Shown here piece by piece: positions 2,479 through 58,300 of a stretch of DNA of 64,000 nucleotides (position 1 is the stretch's first letter; each line of letters begins with the position of its first letter). The DNA is from Macrostomum lignano. Lineage: Eukaryota. The stretch lies in NCBI GenBank assembly GCA_002269645.1, contig NIVC01001973.1, positions 62,001 through 126,000 on the forward strand, given 5' to 3'. The notes under the pieces are model-generated. The model was not told the origin of the DNA, made no database searches, and saw only the letters and a program-made list of their open reading frames with translations. The position numbers and the translations under genes are program-made.

Positions 2479-3228
2479 ACTCCAAAATTCATGCTCATCT
2501 CAAAATCAACTCACCGAGCTGGTTACTGCTAGAACTGCAACAATCAACTGTCGTAGCCATCTTTGAAACTCCTTCGTGAGCTTCGTCGCATGCTTCATTA
2601 CGATCGGTCATTTCTATAGAACAGCTTTTCGTTGTTGTTACTTCTTCAGTTGAATCGGTGGTCTGGGGGGTCCTGGGAAATTTTTTTAAATCCCCTGTAT
2701 GCAGATCGAACAGCAGACGATCGAATTAACGTCTTATACAGTTTGAGCTTGCAGAACACTGAAAACCTAAATGCAGTAGTTTGATAAACAAGATAATAGA
2801 ATTTATCAGCCAATCAGAATTGAGCTGGATGTCAGCTTTCTCAAAGCTGCACGTTATATAAAAATATAAATGCAGTGAGCTCGGTTCATGCTGCTGCACT
2901 GTGGCCTGAGCCCGAAGGCTTTTTAGGCAATTAAAAGTTATTTCGACTGTAGATCGTGTGAGATCAGCTTGAGATGCTGTCCTGTTTAGGAGACTAGACA
3001 TGACAGTACATATATAATTTGGTTAGCAGACATGTAGATTTTTTTCGATTGCTAAATGCATGCTACGAAATCCAAACTACTTACACTTATATATATATAT
3101 ATATTTATTTTATGCATATTACTTAAAGTAAAAAGTAAGAGAATAACGCTTTTTTTCATTTATCGACTCAAGCGAATCGAAAGCCAAAGTGCAGAGTACA
3201 CCCAATTTTCCTCTAGTCCTTCCTCTAG

Positions 3229-18660: not shown

Positions 18661-19374
18661 CGTCGAAATAATATCTGGGTTCAATATTGTATGAATCCCT
18701 AGTTCATATACATTCTCTCTTTTAGCCACTCAGAACTGAAAACCCAATCCTATATTGTGCACCCTTAGAGAGCATTGTCAGTTTGCGTGCATGGCAACCG
18801 CCGCTAGCGCGCCCATCAGGTGCCGGCTGAAAAGAAGCTGGGATTCAGAATAGAGAAACTTGATCACTCCGGGAAGACCCTATCAGGATATTTCTAAGGG
18901 GATTTCATCTGGTAGGGGCGAAAATCTGTTATAAAGAATTTCTAACCAAAGATTTTATCTGTAATCAGTTTAGCAAGTTGAAAATCTCTTTATACATCTC
19001 TGTATGGAGGCTTACTGCTCTGGTTACTAGGGCGGGGGGAAGTGAGCGAAATTCAAGCCGACTCAGAATCCCGCTCTCGTGTTAATTCTTTCTGCTCTCC
19101 TCTCCTCGACAGCGCAACTGTGAGCTCCGGGTAATCCGACACCAGCTGCTGACACGCGGAAGTGAATAAAAGGTTTCATTCGATTCTTTTCCAATATTTT
19201 TTTGGTTTGAACTGGATTAGTAATGTCTCTTTGAGGACAGCTGGAGGCCCGAAAGGAACGTGAATTTGTCGTATCGCTGGTGCATCTAGCATGCTCACGA
19301 AAAATTGGGCTTTTCTTGACTGAAATTGTCTATGGCAAAAACCCTATTCACCGCTATCCGTTCGCTGGAACATA

Positions 19375-19765
19375 CTAGACTTGTCCCGAGATCCCATCCA
19401 GACTTGTCCACAGATCCCGTCCCGACTTGTCCCGAGATCCCGTCCCGACTTGTCCCGAGATCCCGTCCCGACTTGTCCCGATATCCCGTCCCGAATTGTC
19501 CCGAGATCTCGTCCCGACTTGTCCCGATATCCCGTCCCGAATTGTCCCGAGATCTCGTCCCGAATTGTCCCGATATCCCGTCCCGAATTGTCCCGAGATC
19601 TCGTCCCGACTTGTCCCGAGATCCCATCCCGACTTGTCCCGAGATCCCATCCCGACTTGTCCCGAGATCCCGTCCCGAATTGTCCCGAGATCCCATCCCG
19701 ACTTGTCCCGAGATCCCATCCCGACTTGTCCCGATATCCCGTCCCGACTTGTCCCGAGATCCCCT
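19375..19765. repeat. 23-bp minisatellite (CTTGTCCCGAGATCCCGTCCCGA)
   Basis: Direct repeats in a TFAP2 intron. Confidence 0.96.
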
Positions 19766-19846
19766 CCCAACCCCAAAAAGTTTTTTTCCGTCCGAGCGTC
19801 AGGAAACTCAAAGTCCGATCTCCATCAGGTTCCTGCACAGACTCAC

Positions 19847-20215
19847 CTTCGACTAGCGAAGTCAGCAAAGTCACGGTGGCCGCCTTCCGTCTTCCAGCCG
19901 GCAGATTCAGTCCGATTTTGTCTAGCTTGTCTCGCAACGATCGGCCACCGTTTTTACTCTTGGCCCGTCGCAGAACCCCGCCTAGCAGAGAGGCGTTGAG
20001 GCACTCTGGTGGACTCAGGCGACGTTGGATTTCCGCCACGGTCACTTTGTACTTGGAGGTGCTGGACAGGAGGCTGAGACGACCAGGCACGGAGCAGAAC
20101 AGATCCGATGGGGCGCCGAGTCCCGCTCCCAGTAGGATGTCTTTGGCAGCGGCAGCTGCGGCAGCTGCGGCGGCTGCTGCGGTGGCTGAATCAGTTGATG
20201 ACTTGGTGCGCATGC
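19847..20215 (-). CDS. TFAP2: AP-2 coding exon (basic DNA-binding region)
   Basis: cgctcag|GC ATG...GTC GAA G|gtgagt; contains [85 protein letters not shown], the diagnostic AP-2 sequence. Confidence 0.98.
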
Positions 20216-40699: not shown

Positions 40700-41225
40700 C
40701 ATATCTAAATCTCACCCTCTCTTATCTCTGAATCTCACCCTCTCTTATCTTTGAATCTCACCCTCTCTTATCTCTGAATCTCACCCTGTCTTATCTTGGA
40801 ATCTCACCCTCTCTATCTCTGAATCTCAGCCGCTTTCATTTCTGAATCTCACCCTATCTTATCTCTGAATCTCACCCTCTCTTATTTCTGAATCTCACCC
40901 TGTCTTATCTTGGAATCTCACCCTCTCTATCTCTGAATCTCAGCCGCTCTCATTTTTGAATCTCACCCTATCTTATCTCTGAATCTCACCCTCTCTTATT
41001 TCTGAATCTCACCCTCTCTTATCTCTGAATTTCACCCTCTCTTATTTCTGAATCTCACCCTCTCTTATCTCTGAATCTCACCCTCTCTTATCTCTGAATC
41101 TCACCCTCTCTTATCTTTGAATCTCACCCTCTCTTAACCCTGAATCTCACCCTCTCTTATCTCTGAATCTCACCCTTTCTTATCTCTGAATCTCACCCTC
41201 TCTTATCTTTAAATCTTACCCTCTA
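40700..41225. repeat. 23-bp minisatellite (ATCTCACCCTCTCTTATCTCTGA)
   Basis: Direct repeats. Confidence 0.95.
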
Positions 41226-41719
41226 TTATATCCGTGTACGGCCTCTGTCTCTACCATACAATCGTACACCGCTAATTCTAGTGGTCCTTGGTCCAGACGT
41301 GCGCCCATGAGGCTTCTCAATCTTCACAATCCAAATCCTGCATCTAGAGCACCCTGTCCGCAGCTTCACTGAAGTGAATAACATTCAGGCTACTGGAATT
41401 AAGCATTGAGTTGCAAGATAGGCAGAAAATTGCAATCTGGCAAATGCTAAGCATAGCTAGACTTCGAATTTAGACTGCCCACCCCCTCACCCGGCTCCGA
41501 AATCAACAAGCCGTATGATATTGTTTTTATTTTTATACACTTTATTTTATTCATTCATTTCAGCTCACCAGATCTGGCGTGAAATGCGACCTCACCCGAA
41601 CAAAATTTAGCGGATGGCTAGGTTGATGGGCACGCGGTTGGAGTCTCTCCTGATGGGGTCTCACGGTCTGGCATCGCATTCCCAGTTAAAAAAGCTAACA
41701 TTGGCGTCTTACATTGCCG

Positions 41720-41882
41720 CCCCGAAAGCATCGGCGCCCCGAAAGCATCGGCGCCCCTAACATTGGTGCCCTTAACATCGGCGCCCCAAGACCCGGCGAC
41801 CATAACATTGGCGCCCCTATCATCGGCGCCCTCTATCATTGGCGCCACTATCATCGGCGCCCCCCAAGCATCGGGCGCCCCT
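41720..41882. repeat. Short degenerate ATCGGCGCCCC array
   Basis: About 9 degenerate copies with a GGCGCC core. Confidence 0.8.
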
Positions 41883-42134
41883 AACCATCTGGCAGTCATA
41901 AAGGTCATGGCAGAGACGGGGTCTCATCTCACACGCTCTAATCTAACATCATCTATAAGTGACATAAGCCAACCAAAAATTAGCTTTCAATTGCCAATAT
42001 TGCTACTGTTAGTAGCCGCTTATCACGTGCGAATATATAGTTCAGATATAAAATTTTCCAGGAAACGGTCGGTACTCCTAGCTCCAAATCTTAATTACTC
42101 GCCCGAAACCACATACTTTATTTCTTGACACAAC

Positions 42135-42497
42135 TTCCTAACTCTCCCGACACAACATCCTGACTCTCCCGACACAACATCCTGACTTTCCCGACACAAC
42201 ATCCTGACTCTCCCGACACAACATCCTGACTCTCCCGACACAATATCCTGACTTTCCCGACACAACATCCTGACTCTCCCGACACAACATCCTGACTTTC
42301 CCGACACAACATCCTGACTCTCCCGACACAACATCCTGACTTTCCCGACACAACATCCTGACTCTCCCGACACAATATCCTGACTCTCCCGACACAACAT
42401 CCTGACTCTCCCGACACAACATCCTGACTCTCCCGACACAACATCCTGACTCTCCCGACACAACATCCTGACTCTCCCGACACAACATCCTGACTCT
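42135..42497. repeat. 22-bp minisatellite (CTCTCCCGACACAACATCCTGA)
   Basis: Direct repeats. Confidence 0.97.
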
Positions 42498-42984
42498 CTG
42501 CATTCTGACCCACCGACCACCGAAATCACCCATCTGTCTCCTGATCCCGCGTGTAAACAGATCATTTTCCGCGTCATGTACTTTTTTGGCGACATTTTGA
42601 GTTCTTATTTGTTAAAACTAGCTACTGTTTTAGTTTTAGCTTGGATAAAAATATCCGGCTTTAGCTTTCTACTCACAATTGGCGTAATTAGGTGTGAAAG
42701 CAGTTGTTTCGGCTTTTAACAAAATGTACTTTTTTGTTATGAATATATTTGACATACTGGAATGCGTATAGGATGTCATTTTAAATAGGTCAACCTAAAC
42801 ATTGAGATAATAACCAAAGAATTATGATATGAATCATAAAATTATGATTCACAGTAAAGTCACATCGTAAGATTGTAAGCTATATCTCACTTGAAGTTTA
42901 TGAGTTCAGTCTCTCTTTGACTGTGAGCCACACAATGAAATCACGAGCTTAGTTTCCCATTCACTGTGAGATCCTAAGCTTAGT

Positions 42985-43460
42985 CTCACCACGAGATCCC
43001 AAACTTAGTCTCATTCTGAAATTTAGAGCTTAGTCTCACCGTGAGATCCCGAGTTTTTTCTCACCGTAAGATTCCCAGCTTAGTCTCTCTGTGAGGTCAC
43101 GAGCTTAGTCTCAACGTTAGATTCCGAGCTTACTCTCTATTTGGGATTCCGAGCTTAGTTTCACCGTGAGATTCCAAACTTAATTTTACCGTGCGATTCC
43201 GAGCTTAGTCTCACCGTGAGATTCGAGCTTAGTCTCACCGTGAGATTCCGAGAGCTTAGTCTCAATTTGAGATCCGGAGCTTAAGTCTCAGTGTGAGATC
43301 ACGAGCTTAGTCTCACCATGGGATCCCGAGCTTAGTCTCACCGTGAGATTCCGAGTTTAGTCTCACCATGAGATTCCAAGCAATTAGTCTCACCGTGAGA
43401 TCCCGAGTTTAGTCTCACCGTGAGATCCCGAGTTTAGTTTCACCGTGAGATCCCGAGCTA
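42985..43460. repeat. ~25-bp degenerate minisatellite (TGAGATTCCGAGCTTAGTCTCACCG)
   Basis: Direct repeats. Confidence 0.92.
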
Positions 43461-43984
43461 AACTACCTATAAACTGACATTTCTTGAACTGAAACTACTA
43501 ACAGTAAAGTAAAAGCAAAATTGTTTTACCGTGAGTCTTAGTATGGCCTACTACAGGTGGGGAAAAGTCTACAGAATAGATCATTTATTCGATGGAAGAC
43601 AGAACCGCCCTAAAGACGCACGACCCGTCAGTGGCTATCATCAGTAAAGGCAGAGTGAGGATCGCTCAAGCAGAACTGGGATTCTATTGTTCTATTGTGC
43701 CAGAATAATACGAGCTACCTTGGCTTTGCTCAAGTAGTCAAGGCTTGAGCTACTTGTGTCTGAGTCAAGCATCCACTTCAATCACAGACTGTTCTATTCA
43801 AGAAATAAACTCGGATTCCGTCTCCGCCCCCAGGGGGGGGGGTTCTCAGTGTAGCAGCTCCCAGCACCTGACAAAACCTCATCAGTGGTGTCGCTATGGA
43901 TGGCTTTTATGGTTAGGGTGACAAAGCCAAGAATTCTGCACGACAAAATTGCTGCATTATTTTGGGAATCGGTGTTGTTAGCAC

Positions 43985-44665
43985 TCCTTTTGGCGCCGAA
44001 TCCAGACACACGTACCCATTTTGGCGCCGAATTCAGACACACGTACCCATTTTGGCGCCGAATTCAGACACACGTACCCATTTTGGCGCCGAATCCAGAC
44101 ACACGTACCCATTTTGGCGCCGAATTCAGACACACGTACCCATTTTGGCGCCGAATCCAGACACACGTACCCATTTTGGCGCCGAATTCAGACACACGTA
44201 CCCATTTTGGCGCCGAATCCAGACACACGTACTCATTTTGGCGCCGAATTCAGACACACGTACTCATTTTGGCGCCACAGACAGGCAACTCATTTTGACG
44301 CCGTAGGCAGGCAACTCAATTTGGCGCCACAGACAAGCAGCTCATTTTGACGCCGTAGGCAGGCAAATCAATTTGGCGCCACAGACAGGCAGCTCATTTT
44401 GGCGCCACAGACAGGCGACTCATTTTGGCGCCACAGACAGGCACTCATTTTAGTGCCGCAGACAGGCACTCATTTTAGCGCCGCAGACAGGCAACTCATT
44501 TTGGCGCCGCAGACAGGCAACTCATTTTAGCGCCACAGACAGGCAATTCATTTTAGCGCCACAGACAGGCAACTCAATTTGGCGCCACAGACAGGCGATT
44601 CATTTTGGCGCCACAGACAGGCAACTCATTTTGGCGCTACAGACAGGCAATCATTTTGGCGCCGC
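43985..44665. repeat. Compound TTTTGGCGCC array: 31-bp units (43985-44275) then ~26-bp units
   Basis: Direct repeats CATTTTGGCGCCGAAT(T/C)CAGACACACGTACC, then TTTTGGCGCCACAGACAGGCAACTCA. Confidence 0.96.
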
Positions 44666-44949
44666 CTCATCTCCAGCTGCTTGAGAACTGCTTGACAATG
44701 CTTCGACGAAAGCGCACTTGGTTGGGGATACTCTAATTTGATTCTCTTAAAGTCAAAGTCAGAAATTTAATATCTCGTGAATAATTTGGTTATTTCTTAA
44801 AAATTTATGCACCTTTGCGTCTGCAATTTCAGCAAAAATTACACTTCAAGTCAAACAAAGCATACTTATAGCTAGATTTTTTCTGAAGAATCAGTCAGGC
44901 AGTCAGTTTAAAATATAGATAATTTTAACAACCCAGTGCGTGTGACTGT

Positions 44950-45240
44950 CTATCAACTGTCTATTCACTGACACATAACTGTCTATTCACTGACACATAA
45001 CTGTCTATTCACTGACACATAACTGTCTATTCACTGACACATAACTGTCTATTCACTGACACATAACTGTCTATTCACTGACACATAACTGTCTATTCAC
45101 TGACACATAACTGTCTATTCACTGACACAAAACTGTCTATTCACTGACACATAACTGTCTATTCACTGACACAAAACTGTCTATTCACTGACACATAACT
45201 GTCTATTCGCTGACACAAAACTGTCTATTCGCTGACGCAA
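44950..45240. repeat. 22-bp minisatellite (ACTGTCTATTCACTGACACATA)
   Basis: Direct repeats. Confidence 0.97.
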
Positions 45241-45879
45241 AACTAACACCCCACACCCACGCGAGAGCCTACTCCCACCCACACGTAGGCAAGTACCCTG
45301 CCACCCACACAAATTTATCCACCCACTGCTGACACTCGCCCTTCTGCCAAGCACAAAGTCATCCACCCAGCAACCCCCACACTCAGCCTTCAGCTCCCGC
45401 CCATGCGAATCCAGCCGTGCAATTTCAATGCCAGTCGCTAGTCTCGCAGCAACAATAAGAGTGATAAGGCTTCAAGGCTTTAAAGCAATTGGCATGCGAG
45501 TTCTCCTGGCATCCTCAGAGAGCCAATCCTTGAGCAGCTGGTGCCCCAGCCAACTCCAACCTCTCAGGCCAACCGATGCAGTAACTCAAGTCTTAATATA
45601 GACGAGTTGCTTCACCCACTCGGCTGCTTGTCCCAGAGGAGAAATATTCCCAGCAACAAGATAGAGTTGAGAAAGTCAGGAGTTGAAAAGCAACCAGCAG
45701 CAGTCATAGTTGTGGAGAAGACGCTCAAGTAGACGCCCACGCAGACGTCACTGCTGCATCTTGAAATTCAATAAGTTTCTACAAATCCAAATTCCTGTCG
45801 ATAATCATCTAGCTAGGTAGCAGTGCTCTCAAGAGTTGGACAGCTCAAGAACAAGTGCAGCAGACAGAACCAATCGAGT

Positions 45880-46188
45880 ATGCAGTTTTTCACAGAAGTC
45901 GCCATCTGCTGTCTATTGCTGACCGTGCCGACAGTCAAAGTCTGCGGCATGGCTGCGACAATCGACAATGAGGATGATGGCGACATGAACCAAGCGCTGG
46001 AGAGTCAACGCAGCATCCAGGACGGTGTCGAAGGTGATCTACTTTGGATTCTGAAGGCTGCCAGACGGCAGGGCAAGCGGTCCTCGGGTCTGCAGCTGCC
46101 AGCAAAGTACAGCGACTTCGTAAAGGACTGGGCAAAGGAGATGCGCTATTCCACAACCAATATCAGGTATAGGTGCGGCTTGCACTGA
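45880..46188 (+). CDS. Small secreted protein, candidate neuropeptide/peptide-hormone precursor (102 aa if unspliced)
   Basis: Hydrophobic N-terminus MQFFTEVAICCLLLTVPTVKVCG, acidic spacer NEDDGD, Gly-Lys-Arg amidation/cleavage site (RRQGKR), second peptide SSGLQLPAKYSDFVKDWAKEMRYSTTNIR; non-repetitive, GC-rich relative to the flanks; AATAAA at 46403. Confidence 0.65.
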   Translation: MQFFTEVAICCLLLTVPTVKVCGMAATIDNEDDGDMNQALESQRSIQDGVEGDLLWILKAARRQGKRSSGLQLPAKYSDFVKDWAKEMRYSTTNIRYRCGLH

Positions 46189-46669
46189 CTGACGTTAATG
46201 ACAAATTAATGTCCACCAAATTAATATCTGCACCGTTCATTTGCATTGCAGATGGTAAGACTAACCTACCAAAGCAAGTTAAGACAAGCCTCGCCGATCG
46301 ATTGATTGTGTCTTTTAAAAAATTAACACAATAATGTAACATAAAAACTTGAAAACTCAATTGTAACTTAAGCCTTGTTGAAAAATATAACTCAAACCAC
46401 TTCAATAAATAAAATACATTAAATTAATTAAGAAAACTACGCACGTAGTATCGCTTCACTCGAAAAAAACTGGAAGTCGATATCGAGTTCGAATTGTCCG
46501 AAGCTAAATGGCATTTGTTTCGAGTTGGCCACGTTTTGCTTGTTGGAGTTGCTATCGGTATAGGGATAACACTGGTACAAAGCAAACTATGTGAAGGCGA
46601 CAGTCCGCTCGCAGACAGTCAGGAGGTAGGCCAGTCTTGCCTATAACAGCGAAAACCGAAATACAGGGA

Positions 46670-47310
46670 CCCTAAGCCTACTGCGACCCTAACCCTAAAC
46701 CTAATCCAGAACACTAACTCTTAAACCTAATCCATAACCCTAATCCATAACCCTAATCCAGAAACCCTAATCCAGAACCCTAATTCAAAACCCTAATTCA
46801 GAAGCCTAATTCAGAATCCTAATCCAGAACCCTAATCCAGAATCCTAAACCACAAACCTAATCCAGAACCCTAATCCAGAACCCTTATCTAGAACCCTAA
46901 TCCAGAACCCTAACCCAGAACCCTAATCCAGAACCCTAAACCAGAACCGTAAACCAGAACCCAAATCCAGAACCCTAAACCAGAACCCTAATCCAAAACC
47001 CTAATTCAAAACCCTAATCCAAATCCCTAATCCGCGACCCTAATCCAGAACCCTTATCCAGAACCCTAACCTAGAACCCTAATCCAGAACCCTAAACCAC
47101 AAACCTAATTCAGAACCCTAATCCAGAACCCTGATCCACAACCCTAATCCAGAACCCTGATCCACAACCCTAATCCAAAACCCTAACCTAGATACCCTAA
47201 TCAAGATACTCTAACCTAGAACCCTAATCCAGAACCCTAATCCAGAACCCTAATCCAGAACCCTAATCCAGAACCCTAATTCAAAACCCTAATCCAGAAC
47301 CCTAATCCAA
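46670..47310. repeat. Telomere-like 13-bp repeat (CCCTAATCCAGAA; reverse TTCTGGATTAGGG)
   Basis: CCCTAA recurs about every 13 bp; the array begins with ACCCTAACCCTAA. Confidence 0.92.
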
Positions 47311-47910
47311 CAGCAGGTCAACGCAGGTCAAGTTATTGATACACTGGCTTATTTAAGCTAGTTTCAAGACATACAGCATTCGAGAAATATACTCTTAAAT
47401 TACTTCCTAACTTTGGAAAGATAGATTTAGGAAAGAACTCATTTCTTCGCCTAAAAGAGATTTGTTCTGAAACTTCTCAAACACGATGATGTTTCGAAGA
47501 GATTGCATGAAAATCATGTTTGCGTGTAACAGTAGAACTCCCAAGAGAATTAAGGGAGAATTAAACACCAACTTTTAGTTTTATAGTTTACAATAATATT
47601 AGCCGCACCGGATTTTCGTGATTAAGATCGTGATTAAATTGCACAGGGTAGAGTTATTATATTTTATACTACAATAGTACTGCTTGCACTTTATATAGCG
47701 AAGGTGGGAGTGGCACTATATTTATTCTATTGCTCGCTAGCATGCATAAAACTTCAACAAAAGACAATGAAAACTCATAAATAAGTGTTTTACGTAAGCG
47801 AAATAAATATCACAATAAGCGGTGGATTTTTTAATTAACTAGAAAGCTTGAGTCACAGGCCACACTGCTAATGTACCATTAAAAGTTCTTTATCATTGAG
47901 TTGTTCTATA

Positions 47911-48498
47911 CTGTCCGTCAAAAGTTCCGGAACCCTTGCTACAATGTCTTCTAGCGGACATAATTTCAGTCCGTTTCAATTGTAACTTGATTCAAATGAA
48001 AGCTGCGGATCTCAGCTCCATGATGTGGTCAAGAAAAAGTTTATTCGAAGGAGCGCGTGTGAACAGGCCAGTGTTATGTACATAAAGGTTAGAGAAAAAA
48101 AGTGAGGAAAAGACAAACAAGCAATTGACTCTCCCATGAAAGCTGACTGCACAAGAATCCATAAGAGCCTGTTGATTTCAACACAAGTTTTGGCCATAGA
48201 CTAATGTTAGCCAGGCTGAACACTGCGCGCAAACCGATTCCTTCCCATGTGTGTTTGCTCCATAGACTCAGCAACCATAGACAATTGCTTGTTTGTCTTT
48301 TCCTCACTTTTTTTCTCTAACCTTTATGTACATAACACTGGCCTGTTCACACGCGCTCCTTCGAATAAACTTTTTCTTGACCACATCATGGAGCTGAGAT
48401 CCGCAGCTTTCATTTGAATCAAGTTACAATTGAAACGGACTGAAATTATGTCCACTAGAAGACATCGTAGCAAGGGTTCCGGAACTTTTGACGGACAG
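47911..48498. mobile_element. Tc1/mariner-type MITE with 217-bp near-perfect TIRs
   Basis: 47911-48127 is the reverse complement of 48282-48498 (two differences seen, both at CpG); 154-bp spacer; TA on both flanks (47909-47910, 48499-48500). Confidence 0.88.
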
Positions 48499-48979
48499 TA
48501 TATAAGAGTTTTACTTTACTAAGCAGAATCAGGCTGACGGGCAAATGCTTTTATATATATATATACGGGCTATAAATATATGCAAAATTGATTGACAGAT
48601 TTGAACATGCGCGCAAGTCTATCGACACGGATTCTGTGAGATTATCGCAGCATATCAAAAAGCATATTCTTAGCTTATCAACAACATGGCTACAGGATAT
48701 TCAACGCTTCAGTCAATGCGAGTTCATCGAAAAAACCAAGGACCCTGAAAAAGAAACCGAATCGAAATAAACTGGTCGATGGAGAAGAGATCCTCGAATT
48801 ACAAGCTGTGGCAACACGCGCTGTGAAAAATTAAAGTAGACAGTCGTGCAGGCGACAATGATGATGATTACATTCTTTGACGAAGTGGCAAACAGATATT
48901 TTGGGTCAATATTTAAGTCAATGCTGCACTGGCAAAACGCAAAAGAAAAATTCTCGCTACATTCTATTGAAAAGCAAAT

Positions 48980-49490
48980 CGTCAAGATCTACCACAAGTA
49001 TCGTCAAGATCTACCACAAGAATCGTCAAGATCTACCACAAGTGTCGTCAAGATCTACCACAAAGTGACGTCAAGATCTACCGAAAAGTATCGTCAAGAT
49101 CTACCACAAAGTATCGTCAGGTCAAGATCTACCACAAGTATCGTCAAGATCTACCATAAAGTTTCGTCAGGTCAGGATCTACCACAAAGTGTCGTCAAGA
49201 TCTACCACAAAGTGTCGTCAAGATCTACCACAGAGTATCGTCAGGATCTACCACAAAGTATCGTCAAGATCACCACAAAGTGTCGTCAAGATCTACCACA
49301 AAGTGTCGTCAAGATCTACCACAAAGTATCGTCAAGATCTACCACAAAGTGTCGTCAAGATCTACCACAAAGTGTCGTCAAGATCTACCACAGAGTATCG
49401 TCAAGATCTACCATAAGGTATCGTCAGGTCAGGATCTACCACAAAGTATCGTCAAGATCACCACAAAGTGTCGTCAAGATCTACCACAAA
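48980..49490. repeat. 22-23-bp minisatellite (GTCGTCAAGATCTACCACAAAGT)
   Basis: Direct repeats. Confidence 0.96.
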
Positions 49491-50204
49491 ATGGAAGTGG
49501 TATTAAAAAAAATGTGCCATATCTACCAGTAAGAAGTGGATGTGCACTTGCAGGAGGAATGAAAATATGAAATAAATTCATCGACAAAAGGCAGACGGCA
49601 TAATGATTTATAAAAGCATAGAAATAGTCTACATGTAGACTGCGTCTTTATGAGGCCAGACTGAAATTACCAATTTAAATTAGGGGCCACAAACAGGGAT
49701 TTCGTAGAATCATCAGACGACACCATACGAGCGTACAAGTCAAAATGATAAAATCTTAACAATCCAATAAACTCAACGCTTACATACTACGAGCGCTCGT
49801 ATAACCATAAGGACTACATTGAGGCATCTAAATTTAGATCTACAACAACAGAAATTTATCCCATAGGACTCGCAAAGCTGAACTAACCCCAATCGCTAGT
49901 CTTCACTAACGTATATTGTTACGACGGGCCTCGTTTTCTGACATGTCAAATTTAGAAAGTCATAAAAATAGATTAATATATATAATACAAGGCTCTGCTG
50001 CGGCATCCCGCGTATTCAAAATCGATGATGCAATAAAATACTGCTGTACTTGCAGGCACCCATTGATCCACTCTCGAGTGCATGAAGATAGGCAACTGCT
50101 AAATACAATGGCAACCCATAATACTGTTCAAGCTTTATCAAGTATTCACGTAGAGAATATTTATTTTAAAACCGCCAGTACAAAAGAGAATTTAATTAGA
50201 TCTG

Positions 50205-51220
50205 TCACAATTGACTGCCAGTGTCATTTGACTGTCAGTGACATTTGACTGCCAGTGTCAATTGACTGTCAGTGTCAATTGACTGTCAGTGTCATTTGAC
50301 TGTCAGTGTCATTTGACTGCCAGTGTCAATTGACTGTCAGTGTCATTTGACTGCCAGTGTCATTTGACTGCCAGTGACAATTGACTGCCAGTGTCATTTG
50401 ACTGTCAGTGTCATTTGACTGTCAGTGACAATTGACTGTCAGTGACATTTGACTGCCAGTGTCATTTGACTGTCAGTGTCATTTGACTGTCAGTGACATT
50501 TGACTGTCAGTGACAATTGGCTGCCAGTGTCATTTGACTTCCAGTGTCATTTGACTGCCAGTGTCATTTGACTGTCAGTGTCATTTGACTGTCAGTGTCA
50601 TTTGACTGTCAGTGTCATTTGACTGTCAGTGTCAATTGACTGCCAGTGTCATTTGACTGTCAGTGTCAATTGACTGTCAGTGTCAATTGACTGTCAGTGT
50701 CATTTGACTGCCAGTGACAATTGACTGCCAGTGACATTTGACTGTCAGTGACAATTGACTGCCAGTGACAATTGACTGCCAGTGTCAATTGACTGCCAGT
50801 GTCAATTGACTGTCAGTGTCATTTGACTGCCAGTGACAATTGACTGCCAGTGTCAATTGACTGCCAGTGTCAATTGACTGTCAGTGTCATTTGACTGCCA
50901 GTGTCATTTGACTGTCAGTGACAATTGACTGCCAGTGTCATTTGACTGCCAGTGTCATTTGACTGTCAGTGTCATTTGACTGTCAGTGTCATTTGACTGT
51001 CAGTGTCATTTGACTGTCAGTGTCAATTGACTGCCAGTGTCATTTGACTGTCAGTGTCAATTGACTGTCAGTGTCATTTGACTGTCAGTGTCATTTGACT
51101 GCCAGTGTCATTTGACTGCCAGTGTCATTTGACTGTCAGTGTCAATTGACTGTCAGTGACGTTTGACTGCCAGTGTCAATTGACTGTCAGTGACATTTGA
51201 TTGTCAGTGACAATTGACTG
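50205..51220. repeat. 17-bp quasi-palindromic minisatellite (TTTGACTG(T/C)CAGTGTCA)
   Basis: About 60 direct copies. Confidence 0.97.
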
Positions 51221-52094
51221 TGCATGTATTTTGGCCTTCTCTCGAGGACAGGGTGAAGTCGTCAAAGACAATAGAGTCATCCGAGAGTTAATTTGAGGCG
51301 TGCTAGGCCTTCGTCACTTTATGAATTTAGAATGGCATTTTGCATTTATAACAAATCTATGTAGTCTACTTAATTAGTACTTCAAGTAGAAAGTAAAGCG
51401 TTAACACAAAAACTCTTGGACGAAATTTGCGCGACTGTTTAACAAATCTACAACTCTCGTGATGAGCTCGGAACTCAACATTACAGTTGTTTGCAGTGGC
51501 TCCTCGGTGATTCTTGTCATGAAAACGATTTCAACGGTTAAGAAATATAGCCTAATTTACGAGCGTAATAAAGATAAATGATTTAAGGCAGACAGACGGA
51601 GACTTCAGTAAATCTCCAAATTTTCCAGATTATTATAAACACCGGCTTTATTAATAAATTTGAAATTTCGCATGCAAAGAATTATTAAATACCTAATAGC
51701 ATTAGAAGCTGTTATTACTATATCTTGAACTAAACTGGCCTTATTTAATAGCAAAGTTACAAAAAAAGAAAGAAGCAAACTATACTACTATCAGCTACTA
51801 CTATTCATAACTACGTTAGTAGCATATATTGCGCCTCTGCAAACAGTAGCTCGTAGTAACGATTTTTTTGAGTCAAGTACTCAATCATCGGACAGACAAT
51901 TTATACAACTAGATAACTTTAACAGGTGAGTAAGACCAAAGTGAAATTATAATGCCTTCGGCATCCGATGCATTATTTAAAAAAGAGAAGTCAGAAGACT
52001 CGTACAAATGTTAAGGGAACTTTTATAAGTTGCAAAACATGTACAATATACAAAACACATTCTAACATTCAACTTGTGAATTTGGTACGATTAA

Positions 52095-53140
52095 TGGAGG
52101 GCGATTCTTGGGGATTTGACGGCGATTATTGGTGGGGATTTGAGGGTGATTCTTGATGGGGATTTGAGGGCGATTCTTGATGGGGATTTGAGGGTGATTC
52201 TTAATGGGGATTTGAGGGCGATTCTTGATGGGGATTTGAGGGCGATTCTTGATGGGGATTTGAGGGTGATTCTTAATGGGGATTTGAGGGTGATTCTTGA
52301 TGGGGATTTGAGGGTGATTCTTGATGGGGATTTGAGGGCGATTCTTGATGGGATTCGAGGGCAATTCTTGATGGGATTCGAGGGCGATTCTTGATGGGGA
52401 TTTGAGGGCGATTCTTGATGAGGATTTGAGGGCGATTCTTGATGGGATTCAAGGGCGATTCTTGATGGGATTCGAGGGCGATTCTTGATGAGGATTTGAG
52501 AGCGATTCTTGATGGGGATTTGAGGGTGATTTTTGATGGGGATTTGAGGGTGATTCTTGATGGGGATTTGAGGGTGATTCTTGCCGGGGATTTGAGGGCG
52601 ATTTTTTATGAGGATTTGAGGGAGATTCTTGATGGGATTCGAGGGCAATTCTTGATGGGATTCGAGGCCGATTCTTGATGGGATTCGAGGGCGATTCCTG
52701 ATGAGGATTTGAGGGCGATTCTTGATGGGGATTTGAGGGTGATTCTTGATGGGAATTTGAGGGTGATTCTTGCCGGGGATTTGAGGGCGATTTTTGATGA
52801 GGATTTGAGGGAGATTCTTGATGGGATTCGAGGGCAATTCTTGATGGGATTCGAGGCCGATTCTTGATGGGATTCGAGGGCGATTCCTGATGAGGATTTG
52901 AGGGCGATTCTTGATGGGGATTTGAGGGTGATTTTTGATGGGGATTTGAGGGTGATTCTTGATGGGAATTTGAGGGTGATTCTTGCCGGGGATTTGAGGG
53001 CGATTTTTGATGAGGATTTGAGGGAGATTCTTGATGGGATTCGAGGGCAATTCTTGATGGGATTCGAGGGCGATTCTTGATGGGATTCGAGGGCGATTCT
53101 TGATGGGATTCGAGGGCGATTCTTGATGAGGATTCAAGGG
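52095..53140. repeat. 23-24-bp minisatellite (GGGATTTGAGGGCGATTCTTGATG) with 8-9-unit higher-order blocks
   Basis: Direct repeats; marker CTTGCCGGGG at 52580, 52769 and 52982. Confidence 0.96.
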
Positions 53141-53214
53141 CGAAAGGAAATCAAAGCAACAAGAAACATGATCCAATATTTCTCCAGCACAATGCTACTC
53201 AAAGTAGCACCAGC

Positions 53215-53812
53215 TTAGAACTCGCTACTACCCATGGCCTCGTCCTCGTCGTCAACAAATTTATCGTGCTGCCATTTGCCTTCGATGCCGCCACCGCCGC
53301 CGCCTCTGAAGCCGCCGAAGCGGCCGCCACCGCGACGAAAACCGCGGCCGCCGCGCCCGCCCCGACGATATCCGTCGCCGTCTGTAGGCCTGCGCTCTCC
53401 TCGATCGTCGTGCAAAAAATATGACGGCGCTTTCGGCGTAGCCAACGGGTCCAGAGCGGCCGCTGCCGGCGGTCTGTAGTACAACCGATTCGAGTCGAAC
53501 TTGCCGCCCCCGCTTTCGGTAAAGTTTTTCACCGGCCGGACGCCGAGCCGTTCGGCGATTGGTCGGCGACGAAAGCGTCGTTGATTTTGACCGCCAGCTA
53601 ACGGCGACAGCGGCTCCTCGGGCGACGGCGACGGCGACAGCGAAGCAAACCGACGCCCGCCGATTCTGTCGTGAACCCGGCGAGGCGGCTGAGGCGGCAG
53701 CCTGAGGATCACCGGGGAGCGGGATCGGGACGCAGAGCGCGAACGGGAACGCGACGAGTAGCGCCGGCGAGAATAACGATTCGAGGACGACATGTGGATT
53801 GAGCGGCGCTCT
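53215..53812 (-). CDS. RS/RGG protein with BCLAF1/THRAP3 (Btz-like) C-terminal motif, exon 2
   Basis: cctgacag|A GAG; RS tract SRSRSRSASRSRSP; TPKAPSYFLHDDRG...RGGRGGRGF...KWQHDKF resembles BCLAF1/THRAP3 TPKSKKYFLHDDR...GRGRG...KW.HDK and the CASC3 Btz motif; stop at 53215. Confidence 0.8.
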
Positions 53813-53889
53813 CTGTCAGGTGAGAAATGTATTACGAAATTGTGAAATATCCACAGCATACTACTCAATAGTAATATAACATACCCGAT

Positions 53890-54105
53890 ACTAATACCCA
53901 ACCTACCCAATCCCTGATCCCAACCTACCCAATCCCTGATCCCCAACCTACCCAATCCCTGATCCCCAACCTACCCAATCCCTGATCCCCAATCTACCCA
54001 ATCCCTGATCCCCAACCTACCCAATCCCTGATCCCAACCTGCCCAATCCCTAATCCCCAAATTCCCAACCTACTAAATCCCTAATCCAAACCCAATCGCT
54101 GATCA
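53890..54105. repeat. 22-23-bp minisatellite (CCAACCTACCCAATCCCTGATCC) in the intron
   Basis: Direct repeats; G-rich on the minus strand. Confidence 0.93.
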
Positions 54106-54188
54106 TTAATCTACCCTTATCTTCGATCAGCAGCTAACAGCATTGTAAATCAGCCGACTAAGAAATCTCAAGTGTATTATGTACTAAC

Positions 54189-54550
54189 CTATCGCCGCTA
54201 CCCCCGTTGCTATGCTGCCGCTGCGAGTGCCGGACGCTGCTATAAGTTCTAGGCGGCGATCTGGGCTCAGGCGTGAGTCGGTCGTGATGAAATTTCAACA
54301 CCTCAGGTCGTTGAAACACTGGCGCGCTGCCTTCGTCAGTACGCCGAGGCAGACGGATGGCATCGACGTCGGGATCGAAGCGGCGGACCAGCGGCTCAGT
54401 GCTTGGCGGTCCGCGCACTTTACGTTCAATAACAATTGATACATCTTCATCAATAGTGAGAGGCTGACTAGGCTGATTACTTAAGCGACGGAATCTTTCG
54501 CTAGTTGTCTGACTGGTGGTGTGCCGCTTATCTAAACTGCGACTGCTCAT
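54189..54550 (-). CDS. BCLAF1/THRAP3-like protein, exon 1 (120 codons + 2 nt)
   Basis: ATG at 54550; donor GAT AG|gttagt is phase 2 and joins exon 2 in frame (AG|A = Arg), giving 319 aa; CpG-rich non-repetitive coding sequence. Further upstream exons cannot be excluded. Confidence 0.72.
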
Positions 54551-54727
54551 TCTGTTCTGCTGTTGGTTTCTTGAAAAAAAGAAATGACAAATATTTGCTT
54601 TTTAAACTCCAAGTGCTCAAGTAGACACGTTATAGTTATTGAGTTGCTCTCCAAGACAGATGTGCAGTTTTCTAATCACATAAATGATTAAAACAAAGTA
54701 TCTGTAATACACACTAAACTATAAGAC

Positions 54728-55340
54728 ATGGGAATTGCTCCAATGCTACAAGGGTTCGAGGGGAATTGCTCCAATGCTACAAGGGCTTGTGGGGAATTGC
54801 TCCAATGCTACAAGGGCTTGTGGGGAATTGCTCCAATGCTACAAGGGCTTGAGGGGAATTGCTCCAATGCTACAAGGGCTTGAGGGAATTTGCTGCAATG
54901 CTTACAAGGGCTTCTGGGGAATTGCTCCAATGCTACAAGGGCTTGTGGGGAATTGCTCCAATGCTACAAGGGCTTGAGGGGAATTGCTCCAATGCTACAA
55001 GGGCTTGAGGGAATTTTCTCCAATGCTTACAAGGGCTTCTGGGGAATTGCTCCAATGCTACAAGGGCTTGAGGGGAATTGCTCCAATGCTACAAGGGCTT
55101 GAGGGAATTTGCTCCAATGCTTACAAGGGCTTCTGGGGAATTGCTCCAATGCTACAAGGGCTTGTGGGGAATTGCTCCAATGCTACAAGGGCTTGTGGGG
55201 AATTGCTCCAATGCTACAAGGGCTTGTGGGGAATTTCTCCAATGCTACAAGGGCTTGTGGGGAATTTCTCCAATGCTACAAGGGCTTGTGGGAAATTGCT
55301 CCAATGCTAAAAGGGCTTGTGATGAATTGCTCCAATGCTA
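54728..55340. repeat. 31-bp minisatellite (GGGAATTGCTCCAATGCTACAAGGGCTTGTG)
   Basis: Direct repeats. Confidence 0.96.
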
Positions 55341-58300
55341 CTAGAGTTAGAAAAAGTAAATAAATCAATTTTTATTACTACAAGTAGTTTGAGGTTAAAA
55401 GGTAACATTTCTTAAAAATAGCATAAGATTTAGACATAGTAGGTATTATACTTTTTTAATATTTGTAAACTTTAGGAGAATCATCCTTAGGCTTAGGTCT
55501 GGGCCCTCGCCACTCTGTGAAAAATTACTAGGCTTTAAATGTCTTGCTTAGCTAGGCCAACAATATTTTATATCTAATTTCTGAAGAGATATTAATACTA
55601 ATAGTAATATAAAACAATTTACAGTAAGTAAGTGCAGTCTATTTCAAATAGCCTAATATTCTAGTAATGGAGCCTAATAAATAAAAATCTAGACTAAATT
55701 CTATAGTCCAGATAGTGCAGCATAGTACGTATACCAGAAAATGCCTTTTTTGTTTTGCTATACCAAATGCATGCCAGTTTTAAATCACAAAAAATTATTG
55801 ACTGTTGTAAAATTCTTCAAGAAAAATGCAATTGAGGAAACTAATTTCAAATTGTCTAAAGAAATGTTTTTAAACAAAACTTTCTACAACAACTTAGCAA
55901 ATGCAAAAATTGCTAAGATTACCAACAACTTTTTAATTATTTAACTATTTTGTTAACTTTATATTTATAAAATTACCATTTGAATTATAAACTAAGATGA
56001 GTTTTTTGAAACTCTTGTAGCATACATACTTTTAAAAAAGGAAAATTATTGAAATGTTTAATTTTGTGTTTGTCAAAGTTTTAAAGTTTTGGTAAATATA
56101 AATTGGTATGCCAAAAATTTACTTGAGCCTCAAGTGGTAACACCAAAGTGATAAACCAAAATAGCTAAACTATCCATTAGTACTGGTATACTAGAAATTT
56201 CTAGCATACCATGTAACTTTCCAAAGTGTAGACTAAACCTTACCTTCAGATTACTAAACAATGTAATACTAGGAGACTAAAAAGACCTGTGATATATTAT
56301 ACAGTATTTAATTGGTTATAGTTTGAAATACCATTTTTATAATTAGTACTAAGACCAGATGGCCACAGCTCTAAATGTCTAACTTTCTTAGTTAATACAG
56401 GTAAATATTTAAAATTGCATGAGTTGAAGATGTGGCAGTATATTGATTTTATGTATATGTCTATTAGTTTGAGATGGCTATTGGCTATCTTTGGTTAAAA
56501 TTGCAATTGCTCCATTTAAAAAAAACTAAAACTAGATGGAAGGGATAGGGATTGAGAGATTTCTTGAAGCATTGCTTTCTTGTCAATCCTGAATACCAAT
56601 TCTTCTGTTGCAATCATGGCTAGATGCCCTATAGCATCCATGCCATCTACTCATATAATTTTTACCATAGAGACATATATATGACCTTTGGTAGACCTAT
56701 GCAACTTTGGCAACTCTAGTATATCAAAGGCCCTATTTTGACATCTACCTAAACAAGTTTCTATAGTGCTATTGCCAGCTGCGCAACATCTTAAGCAATA
56801 TCCTTTTCTAGGTGGCGCATTAGTATGGTGTTTAAAACTATCTATTTAGTAATTTATTAATAAACTCTCAATTGTTCTATTGATAAAACTTTTTTTAAAT
56901 TTTCAAAAAAGAATTAAATATATGAAATAAGAGCTAGAAGATTGCTGATATACTATATTAGAATTAGATTAACCAAAAAAATATTTGTATAAGTTAAGGT
57001 TATAGCTTTTATTATTAGCATTTATCTATTAAATAAATCAAATAGGGCCTAGCCTAATATACCTTGTTGCATATGCATCCAGGTTTCTTATATAGGATTG
57101 TGGTAGGTGGGTGCCTACTACTGACAATTTTCAAATTGCCCTGTTTCTATTTGTAATTTATCATTTGTCCCAGGTTTGGCCCTCTTATGTCCACCTTAAG
57201 GTGTTGCCCTGACGTCACCCCTCGTCATTTCCTACTCCCTGGGTCTAGCCCTCCATTCCCCTGTTCTGGCCTTTGTGCCCCTTTTTCTGCTCAATGTAGC
57301 TTTTGCCAATCTTCCCCATATTAATTTTTGCTTGTCCATGTTTATGTCCATATTAACTAGAATAATTAATGCTCAAACCATATTACGATCTTTGTGCGCC
57401 ATCATATGGTCTTAAACAATAATATTTATAGCTCAATGCGAGCCCACCAAAATTAACTCTGACCCCCCATCCCTCCTTTTCTCTTGTTTTACTGCTTCAA
57501 ACTGTTGACTTCTAATATTTTCCTATTTGGTTGATCAATTACTTGCGTGTTTAATCAATAACTAGTGCATCCGTTTAGCAACTAATAGTACCTGTTTTAT
57601 AGTTGCTTTTGCAGCATCACCTTGCATCTTATTATTTGTTGTTAGTAATTACAATTTTATCCAGTGCAATTAATAAACTCAATTAAACTTAATACTCATT
57701 GCTTAATAAAGACCATAGCTTATCTTAAGTCATTTGCCCGTGGGGCATAAAATAACCAAGTTCTCATCTTAAAGAAAGCTCTTGAGACTTCAATGCTCTA
57801 TAATACGCAATTACGGTGGTGGCAATGCTACTCTACTAATATTAATCAGTCAAGCATTTGAAGTGCATTAACTACGATGTCTGAGGACCCCTCTGAATGC
57901 TCAGGCCTAACTAAGACTGCTTGCCTACAACTGAAACTATCCTCCCCCCAGAATTTAAGGACCCTGGCAGTCGGAGTTAAACAGGAAAATTTTGTTGTGA
58001 TTTGTCTGCGCGATTTTCCGGCTTTATTTGTGCGAATGCAATGCTAACTAGTTTCAAAGAAACCTAAACCTACCCACTTCAAACTAGAAAATTTTTTTAT
58101 CTTCTTTTTTGCTCCACTTCAGGATTATTGATGACTTTTTAATAAACTAATAGATCTATATTATTGGCTTTAAATTTAACATAATTTTAGGTAGGCCTAA
58201 TTATCATTATTAGAATAGGGTAACATCTTATCAATCAAACAAGGGATCTTCAAAACCAAAAATGCTAGTGACTTTCATTTTTATTATCTCATGGGCCTAG

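Follow-up and report, generated by a model that had tools for sequence, protein, structure and literature searches.

Positions 45880–46258 of the window, the whole 64,000-nucleotide stretch of DNA analysed here, hold a plus-strand gene of Macrostomum lignano, Mlig026646, that is real and has an apparently constrained coding frame, the constraint resting on three substitutions. By its sequence, the predicted protein of 97 residues resembles a small secreted pro-peptide and fits a peptide-hormone precursor without amounting to proof of one. The gene is known so far only from M. lignano, where it appears to be an expressed gene of the small, secreted pro-peptide type. We tentatively put it forward as a candidate orphan prohormone, that is, the precursor of a signalling peptide of the regulated secretory pathway.

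Gene structure and annotation

The reading frame starts with an ATG at 45880 in a good context (A at −3), and exon 1 runs over 287 nt to 46166 on the plus strand. A GT–AG intron of 85 nt (46167–46251; donor CAG/GTATAG at 46166/46167, acceptor TTGCAG/ATGGTAA at 46251/46252) follows in phase 2 and splits the AGA codon of the penultimate residue, Arg96, after its second base; its span is that of the GenBank model. The coding part of exon 2 (46252–46258) supplies the A that completes Arg96, a TGG codon for Trp97 and a TAA stop. The spliced coding sequence of 294 nt thus encodes 97 amino acids, from MQFF to a terminal NIRW, and the unspliced reading would end in NIRYRCGLH. Two overlapping AATAAA hexamers on the same strand (46405–46410 and 46409–46414), read from the sequence about 150 nt past the stop, are likely to be the poly(A) signal of the gene.

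In a protein-database search, the spliced reading frame of 45880–46258 was identical to the M. lignano GenBank entry 'hypothetical protein BOX15_Mlig026646g2/g3' (accessions PAA53606.1, PAA62103.1 and PAA83880.1, named g2 and g3). The product of the open reading frame was 99% identical to the 97-aa GenBank/UniProt protein BOX15_Mlig026646g3, and an exact look-up of the unspliced 102-aa product gave zero matches. The GenBank annotation of the Mlig_3_7 assembly is the 'coregenes' set, made from StringTie/TACO RNA-seq assemblies, a de novo transcriptome and TransDecoder, with zero ab initio models (PMC5730564). Because this annotation was built solely from transcripts, the Mlig026646 transcript and its splice junction are RNA-derived; expression and splicing are taken here from that annotation, and coding status is a TransDecoder call. 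The annotation allowed multi-mapping, so the transcript may stem from any of the three loci described below. Neither the gene ID, in four M. lignano expression papers and their supplements (which may be incomplete or use other IDs), nor the candidate peptide strings, in literature text, were found.

These data bear out the gene model of the preliminary description, which had proposed the ATG-started frame at 45880 with the 46167–46251 intron and the NIRW end: this is exactly the RNA-based GenBank model, and the Arg codon split after its second base (AGA, phase 2) is there. The 3′ end, which had been left ambiguous and referred to cDNA, is given by the RNA-derived annotation as the spliced NIRW form, an indirect answer that comes from annotation. 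The flanking motifs fared less evenly. The AATAAA signals lie at 46405 and 46409, not at 46403, and the CRE-like octamer AGACGTCA, matching TGACGTCA at 7 of 8 bases, is present on the plus strand at 45743–45750 as a motif match only. The window has 9 copies of the heptamer GACGTCA where 4.9 ± 2.8 would be expected, and at least as many turned up in 13 of 100 shuffles; with the count at chance level, the CRE-like site, which had been offered in support, carries no weight.

Genomic copies and evidence for coding

An exact look-up showed that the protein is encoded identically on three contigs of assembly GCA_002269645.1 (Mlig_3_7), with a gene span of 379 bp at each. The window segment 42880–49258 is 100% identical to its NIVC01001973.1 stretch; the copy on NIVC01003056.1 is 98% identical over a 2-kb alignment spanning the gene, and the copy on NIVC01000398.1 is 92.5% identical over the best alignment, of about 2.4 kb, that spans it. 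Over the coding sequence the three copies agree at 99% or more of positions. The GT and AG dinucleotides of the intron are kept in all three, and within the 64-kb window we found no paralogue. The M. lignano genome is partly duplicated, with known redundancy (PMC5730564), and the three copies agree with this. Three copies also argue that Mlig026646 is not a transposable element, which would be expected at far higher copy number. The preliminary description had named a match to a transposable element or to a known non-secreted protein as what would speak against its reading; neither was found.

Exon 1 of the NIVC01000398.1 copy differs from the window at 3 of 287 positions (45924, 46017 and 46122). 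All three differences lie at third codon positions and are synonymous, an outcome with P = 0.011–0.022 under neutrality when 22–28% of possible substitutions are synonymous (n = 3 events), and the same three changes alter the protein in every one of the five other frames. Tallied differences give a divergence of 1.0% in exon 1, 2.4% (2/85) in the intron and about 4% (about 10/242) in the 3′ flank. One of the intron changes would be non-synonymous (Gly to Ala) in the read-through tail, which fits that tail being intron. The length of the reading frame is by itself within chance, since 35 mechanical ORFs in the window reach 150 aa or more. What lifts the gene above chance is, first, that GenBank carries exactly this spliced model, derived from RNA, at three loci and, second, that no frame but this one leaves the three differences in exon 1 between homeologous copies silent.

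Architecture of the predicted protein

The N-terminus (codons 1–23, 45880–45948, plus strand; MQFFTEVAICCLLLTVPTVKVCG) resembles a signal peptide by hydropathy and the (−3,−1) rule, both applied as heuristics. Its hydrophobic core comprises residues 7–16 (VAICCLLLTV), with a 9-residue Kyte–Doolittle mean of up to 2.9, and is followed by P-T-V-K-V-C-G, in which V21 at −3 and G23 at −1 satisfy the rule; judged by hand, the predicted cut falls after G23. The n-region has no positive charge and contains a Glu. The core is too short to be a membrane anchor and is broken by Pro, which argues against one.

Behind the predicted cut lies an acidic spacer or propeptide (codons 24–44, 45949–46011, plus strand; MAATIDNEDDGDMNQALESQR) with a net charge of −5. 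A candidate amidated peptide follows on the same strand (codons 45–64, 46012–46071; SIQDGVEGDLLWILKAARRQ); it is net neutral, has an internal RR at residues 62–63, and its N-terminal boundary is uncertain. It runs into Gly-Lys-Arg (codons 65–67, 46072–46080, plus strand), read from the sequence as a canonical dibasic site joined to an amidation-donor motif. The remainder is a 30-residue C-terminal peptide, SSGLQLPAKYSDFVKDWAKEMRYSTTNIR plus the final Trp, most of it encoded on the plus strand by codons 68–95 and two bases of Arg96 (46081–46166). This peptide (residues 68–97) has a net charge of +2 and includes an amphipathic helical stretch with a hydrophobic moment of 0.45–0.56. There is no Cys after residue 22, and the mature region is without repeats.

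The GKR site is the single clean dibasic-plus-Gly site of the protein. Shuffling the mature region yields G[KR][KR] in 9.8% of cases and GKR itself in 2.7%; with the general motif in about one shuffle in ten, GKR is not beyond chance. R62–R63 are separated from it by Gln64 alone, which makes a compound site, RRQGKR, and because RR sits one residue before GKR, '...ARRQ-amide' would be one of several possible outcomes. At the other end, R44 stands alone: P4, P6 and P8 are all non-basic. Given this, and the RR inside the peptide, the exact product 'SIQDG...ARRQ-amide' is a guess. The precursor layout of the preliminary description therefore stands in part: the signal-peptide-like start, the acidic spacer and GKR are present, but the proposed cut after R44 falls at a lone Arg and the peptide contains RR. 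An AlphaFold2 (AF2) run on the single sequence, with no alignment, gave a pLDDT of 48 and no confident fold, with low-confidence helices at residues 36–63 and 75–88. Low-confidence fold predictions are usual for pro-peptides.

Homology and fold searches

No relative outside M. lignano was found by a word-indexed search of 5.8 billion proteins or by an exhaustive phmmer search of 1.84 billion representatives, databases that may lack other Macrostomum. In both, the matches were alternative models of Mlig026646 and one 2982-aa bacterial repeat adhesin, which we discarded as repeat-summed noise without any single matched stretch. No Pfam family matched the whole protein or the isolated peptide segments (E up to 10), nor did one match the older models, and Rfam gave zero matches in the 64-kb window. 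A PDB sequence search returned only uS7, a ribosomal protein, and helix 1 of the TGIF1 homeodomain, each with E about 1. A TALE homeodomain was rejected: the TGIF1 match (E = 0.97) covers helix 1 only, no frame of the window contains W[FY]xNxR (helix 3), and there is no Pfam homeobox match. UniProt names a 74-aa alternative model (A0A1I8F8C3) 'SLBP_RNA_bind domain-containing'; our own Pfam search, run to E = 1, did not recover that domain. The older UniProt models of the gene, which come from another annotation, carry frame shifts, a skipped segment, or a fusion of exon 1 to 48697–48822 and then to 53.2–53.7 kb, and are treated here as artefacts.

Alternative readings

The extent of the gene and the coding status of its transcript can each be read differently. 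The ab initio UniProt model A0A1I8H8A0 (248 aa) makes exon 1 the first exon of a longer gene that continues from NIR into 48697–48822 and on to 53.2–53.7 kb. Besides the existence of that model, the middle segment has a usable acceptor (ctacag/G) and donor (/gtgaaa) that keep the frame. Yet the RNA-based annotation closes the coding sequence at 46258, with AATAAA signals about 150 nt past that stop, and the tail of A0A1I8H8A0 is an antisense reading of a minus-strand CASC3/Btz-like ORF at 53215–53955, which marks it as a prediction artefact; the 48.7-kb segment is, moreover, unmatched in the flank of the NIVC01003056.1 copy that was examined. A longer gene is, on this evidence, very improbable. 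We consider it unlikely, though less so, that the transcript is real and its reading frame has no functional product, being either non-coding or a de novo transcript of very recent origin, situated between minisatellites, from which TransDecoder picked the longest ORF. With 97 codons the frame is short and mechanical ORFs abound in the window, protein searches gave zero homologues, AF2 confidence is low, the locus sits among tandem-repeat arrays, and the region, non-coding flanks included, is about 98% conserved among copies, so that constraint is hard to measure. Against these points stand the three exon substitutions, all silent in this frame only, the lower divergence of exon 1 (1.0%) than of the intron (2.4%) and 3′ flank (about 4%), the good start-codon context with A at −3, and the coherent order of signal peptide, acidic spacer and basic site.

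If a secreted protein is made, it need not signal. It could be a lineage-specific gland, seminal-fluid, mucus/adhesive or antimicrobial-type product, secreted constitutively or from gland cells, with GKR either incidental or a furin-type maturation site; we think this possible, if on the unlikely side. The gene-level evidence for it is identical to that for a prohormone, and the GKR motif is within chance. Signal peptide, acidic propiece, basic site and an amphipathic, mildly cationic peptide are also seen in many host-defence precursors. Reproductive glands are also where some of the planarian 'prohormone' genes are expressed (PMC2953531), and orphan status fits the fast-evolving, species-restricted reproduction-related genes reported for Macrostomum (PMC7336406). 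However, the gene ID is missing from supplements on reproduction-related and germline/neoblast genes (possibly incomplete or with other IDs), a net charge of just +2 is weak for an antimicrobial peptide, and a mature region with neither Cys nor repeats is unlike most structural gland products. A last reading concerns ancestry: Mlig026646 would be a diverged NPY/NPF member that lost its RF/RY-amide end but kept, as a relic, a phase-2 intron in the codon of the penultimate Arg. Intron position and phase do agree (AG/gt...ag/A in Arg96, with one residue left for exon 2), and an intron separates the exon for RXR from the terminal residue in the NPY genes of flatworms and vertebrates (PMC2953531). 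But a phase-2 split of a given codon has a prior of about one in three for phase alone, and little else agrees. The C-terminus is N-I-R-W-stop, with no RXR, F/Y or Gly donor (and so no RxR[F/Y]-Gly), and no exon starting with R[FYW]G lies within 10 kb downstream. The preliminary description, which had raised the NPY/NPF hint, had itself reported no RF-G/RY-G exon, and our scan of 46167–56000 likewise found none. The precursor layout is also wrong, the 30-residue peptide lying at the C-terminal end after a 44-residue spacer and not directly behind the signal peptide. Its Tyr residues are at positions 8 and 21 counted from the C-terminus; in the NPF family this spacing is 10 and 17. No Pfam Hormone_3 match was obtained even with the isolated peptide (E up to 10). 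With only intron phase and position in agreement, we reject NPY/NPF membership, and a diverged member is extremely improbable.

A candidate prohormone and its proposed processing

We return to the orphan prohormone as our working reading. Planarian prohormones have been recognized in silico by a signal sequence, basic cleavage sites, a length of <200 aa and dissimilarity to other genes (PMC2953531). The predicted layout of Mlig026646 would fit this description with its signal-peptide-like start, acidic spacer and GKR; the protein has 97 aa, no Pfam family and no relatives outside M. lignano in the searches above, hence no similarity to otherwise annotated genes, and as to cDNA the identical model in an RNA-only annotation provides it indirectly. 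M. lignano has a PC2 homologue in its nervous system, GYIRFamide-positive neurons and amidated FMRFamide-like peptides, and PC2 knockdown is lethal during post-embryonic development (PMC4490696).

In the mechanism that we propose, Mlig026646 is transcribed and its one 85-nt intron removed to give what would be a 97-residue pre-pro-peptide, whose 23 N-terminal residues would act as a signal peptide and be cleaved off in the ER. The Cys-free, largely unstructured 74-residue pro-peptide would then enter the regulated secretory pathway, where a prohormone convertase would cleave the compound basic site R62-R63-Q-G-K66-R67 and a carboxypeptidase would trim the basic residues. Two products could result: an acidic N-terminal fragment that ends either in ...AARRQ-amide, with Gly65 as amide donor, or in ...ILKAA, and the C-terminal peptide of 30 residues, SSGLQLPAKYSDFVKDWAKEMRYSTTNIRW, mildly basic and amphipathic, whose last residue, Trp, would keep a free carboxyl group. 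One of the two would serve as the extracellular signal, a neuropeptide or peptide hormone. An equally good choice of product makes the acidic N-terminal part the spacer and the 30-residue C-terminal peptide the product. Secretion, cleavage, amidation, signalling role and cell type are all inferred from the protein sequence.

Taken one step further, Mlig026646 might encode a previously undescribed Macrostomum neuropeptide or peptide hormone, the ...AARRQ-amide or the 30-residue ...NIRW peptide, acting on some receptor; this we hold more tentatively than the prohormone reading itself. Less likely is an extension in which the NPY-type intron would mark a degenerate offshoot of the expanded flatworm NPY family whose RF-amide end was lost. 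The preliminary description had seen in it a candidate for an undescribed signalling molecule, outside any family it could assign; as a hypothetical protein, it is already in GenBank and UniProt, annotated but uncharacterised.

A free-living flatworm, M. lignano serves as a transgenic, regenerating model, and planarian peptide hormones control germline and reproductive development (PMC2953531). The searchable literature yielded no catalogue of prohormones for M. lignano. If the candidate were validated, it would add one ligand to an unexplored M. lignano system and exemplify signalling peptides restricted to one lineage. That would be an incremental gain: orphan ORFs for small secreted products abound, and Mlig026646 already has an annotation.

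Surroundings of the gene

The gene occupies a unique island of about 1.4 kb amid dense minisatellite arrays (window 41001–51000). Upstream are a 22-bp unit repeated 17 times at 42127, a 25-bp unit repeated 20 times at 42961, 31- and 26-bp arrays at 43988–44665 and a 22-bp unit repeated 13 times at 44955; downstream are a 13-bp unit repeated 47 times at 46700–47309, a 23-bp unit repeated 22 times at 48979 and a 17-bp unit repeated 46 times from 50211. Minisatellite copy number differs among the three homeologous loci. In the NIVC01000398.1 copy, 13 bp (AGTCTAAGACGTC) are inserted at about 2990–3002, in alignment between window positions 45876 and 45877 and five bases ahead of the ATG. Perhaps through a small duplication, the insertion gives rise to a second AGACGTCA, the same octamer as at 45743.

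Further along the plus strand, 48697–48822 is a 42-codon open segment in frame with exon 1 and conserved in the NIVC01000398.1 copy; it may serve now and then as an alternative exon, or be a product of chance. On the minus strand, an ORF at 53215–53955 contains a CASC3/Barentsz (Btz) eIF4AIII-binding domain (Pfam 1.5e-5, above cut-off), with a tail rich in RGG. Read on the plus strand, this DNA is Pro-rich; that reading is the one used in A0A1I8H8A0, where it is fused to exon 1 of Mlig026646, an annotation artefact. Elsewhere in the window, a minus-strand ORF of 289 aa at 19344–20213 has a strong AP-2 domain (Pfam TF_AP-2, 7e-42) and is presumably an exon of the M. lignano AP-2 homologue. The segment 14001–16000 has extreme strand asymmetry (GC 0.59, GC skew 0.56, AT skew 0.74); its mechanical minus-strand ORF of 728 aa is without a Pfam match and resembles a purine-rich low-complexity repeat.

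Comparison with known systems

What Mlig026646 has in common with the NPY/NPF superfamily is the phase-2 intron in the penultimate Arg codon of a C-terminal peptide; unlike that superfamily, it lacks the RxR[F/Y]-amide, the Gly donor and a CPON-like extension behind them. A second likeness concerns the candidate amidated peptide. The core of CRH/DH44-type peptides, ...LLLEIARRQ..., resembles its LLWILKAARRQ, so that both have a short hydrophobic-then-ARRQ stretch within a predicted helix. Neither the whole protein nor isolated segments gave a Pfam CRF match, and the peptide would end halfway through the length of that family (about 40 residues, amidated); we reject CRH/DH44 and regard the likeness as coincidence.

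Host-defence precursors such as those of amphibian skin peptides consist of a signal peptide, an acidic propiece, KR and an amphipathic C-terminal peptide. Mlig026646 would have the same order of modules and likewise an amphipathic, helical-prone peptide at its C-terminus, but its net charge there is only +2 and there is no homology.

A parallel in overall plan can be drawn with the 'secreted peptide prohormone' (spp) and 'neuropeptide precursor' (npp) genes of Schmidtea mediterranea, to which protein searches detected no sequence similarity. Those genes were confirmed by cDNA, mass spectrometry of their peptides (40/51) and in situ hybridization (about 85% in the CNS) (PMC2953531), whereas Mlig026646 is known from sequence and annotation. 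Like the predicted Mlig026646 product, they are small (<200 aa), with a signal sequence, a spacer, basic sites and an optional Gly amide donor, and, like it, they show no similarity to other protein families and are often lineage-restricted (PMC2953531).
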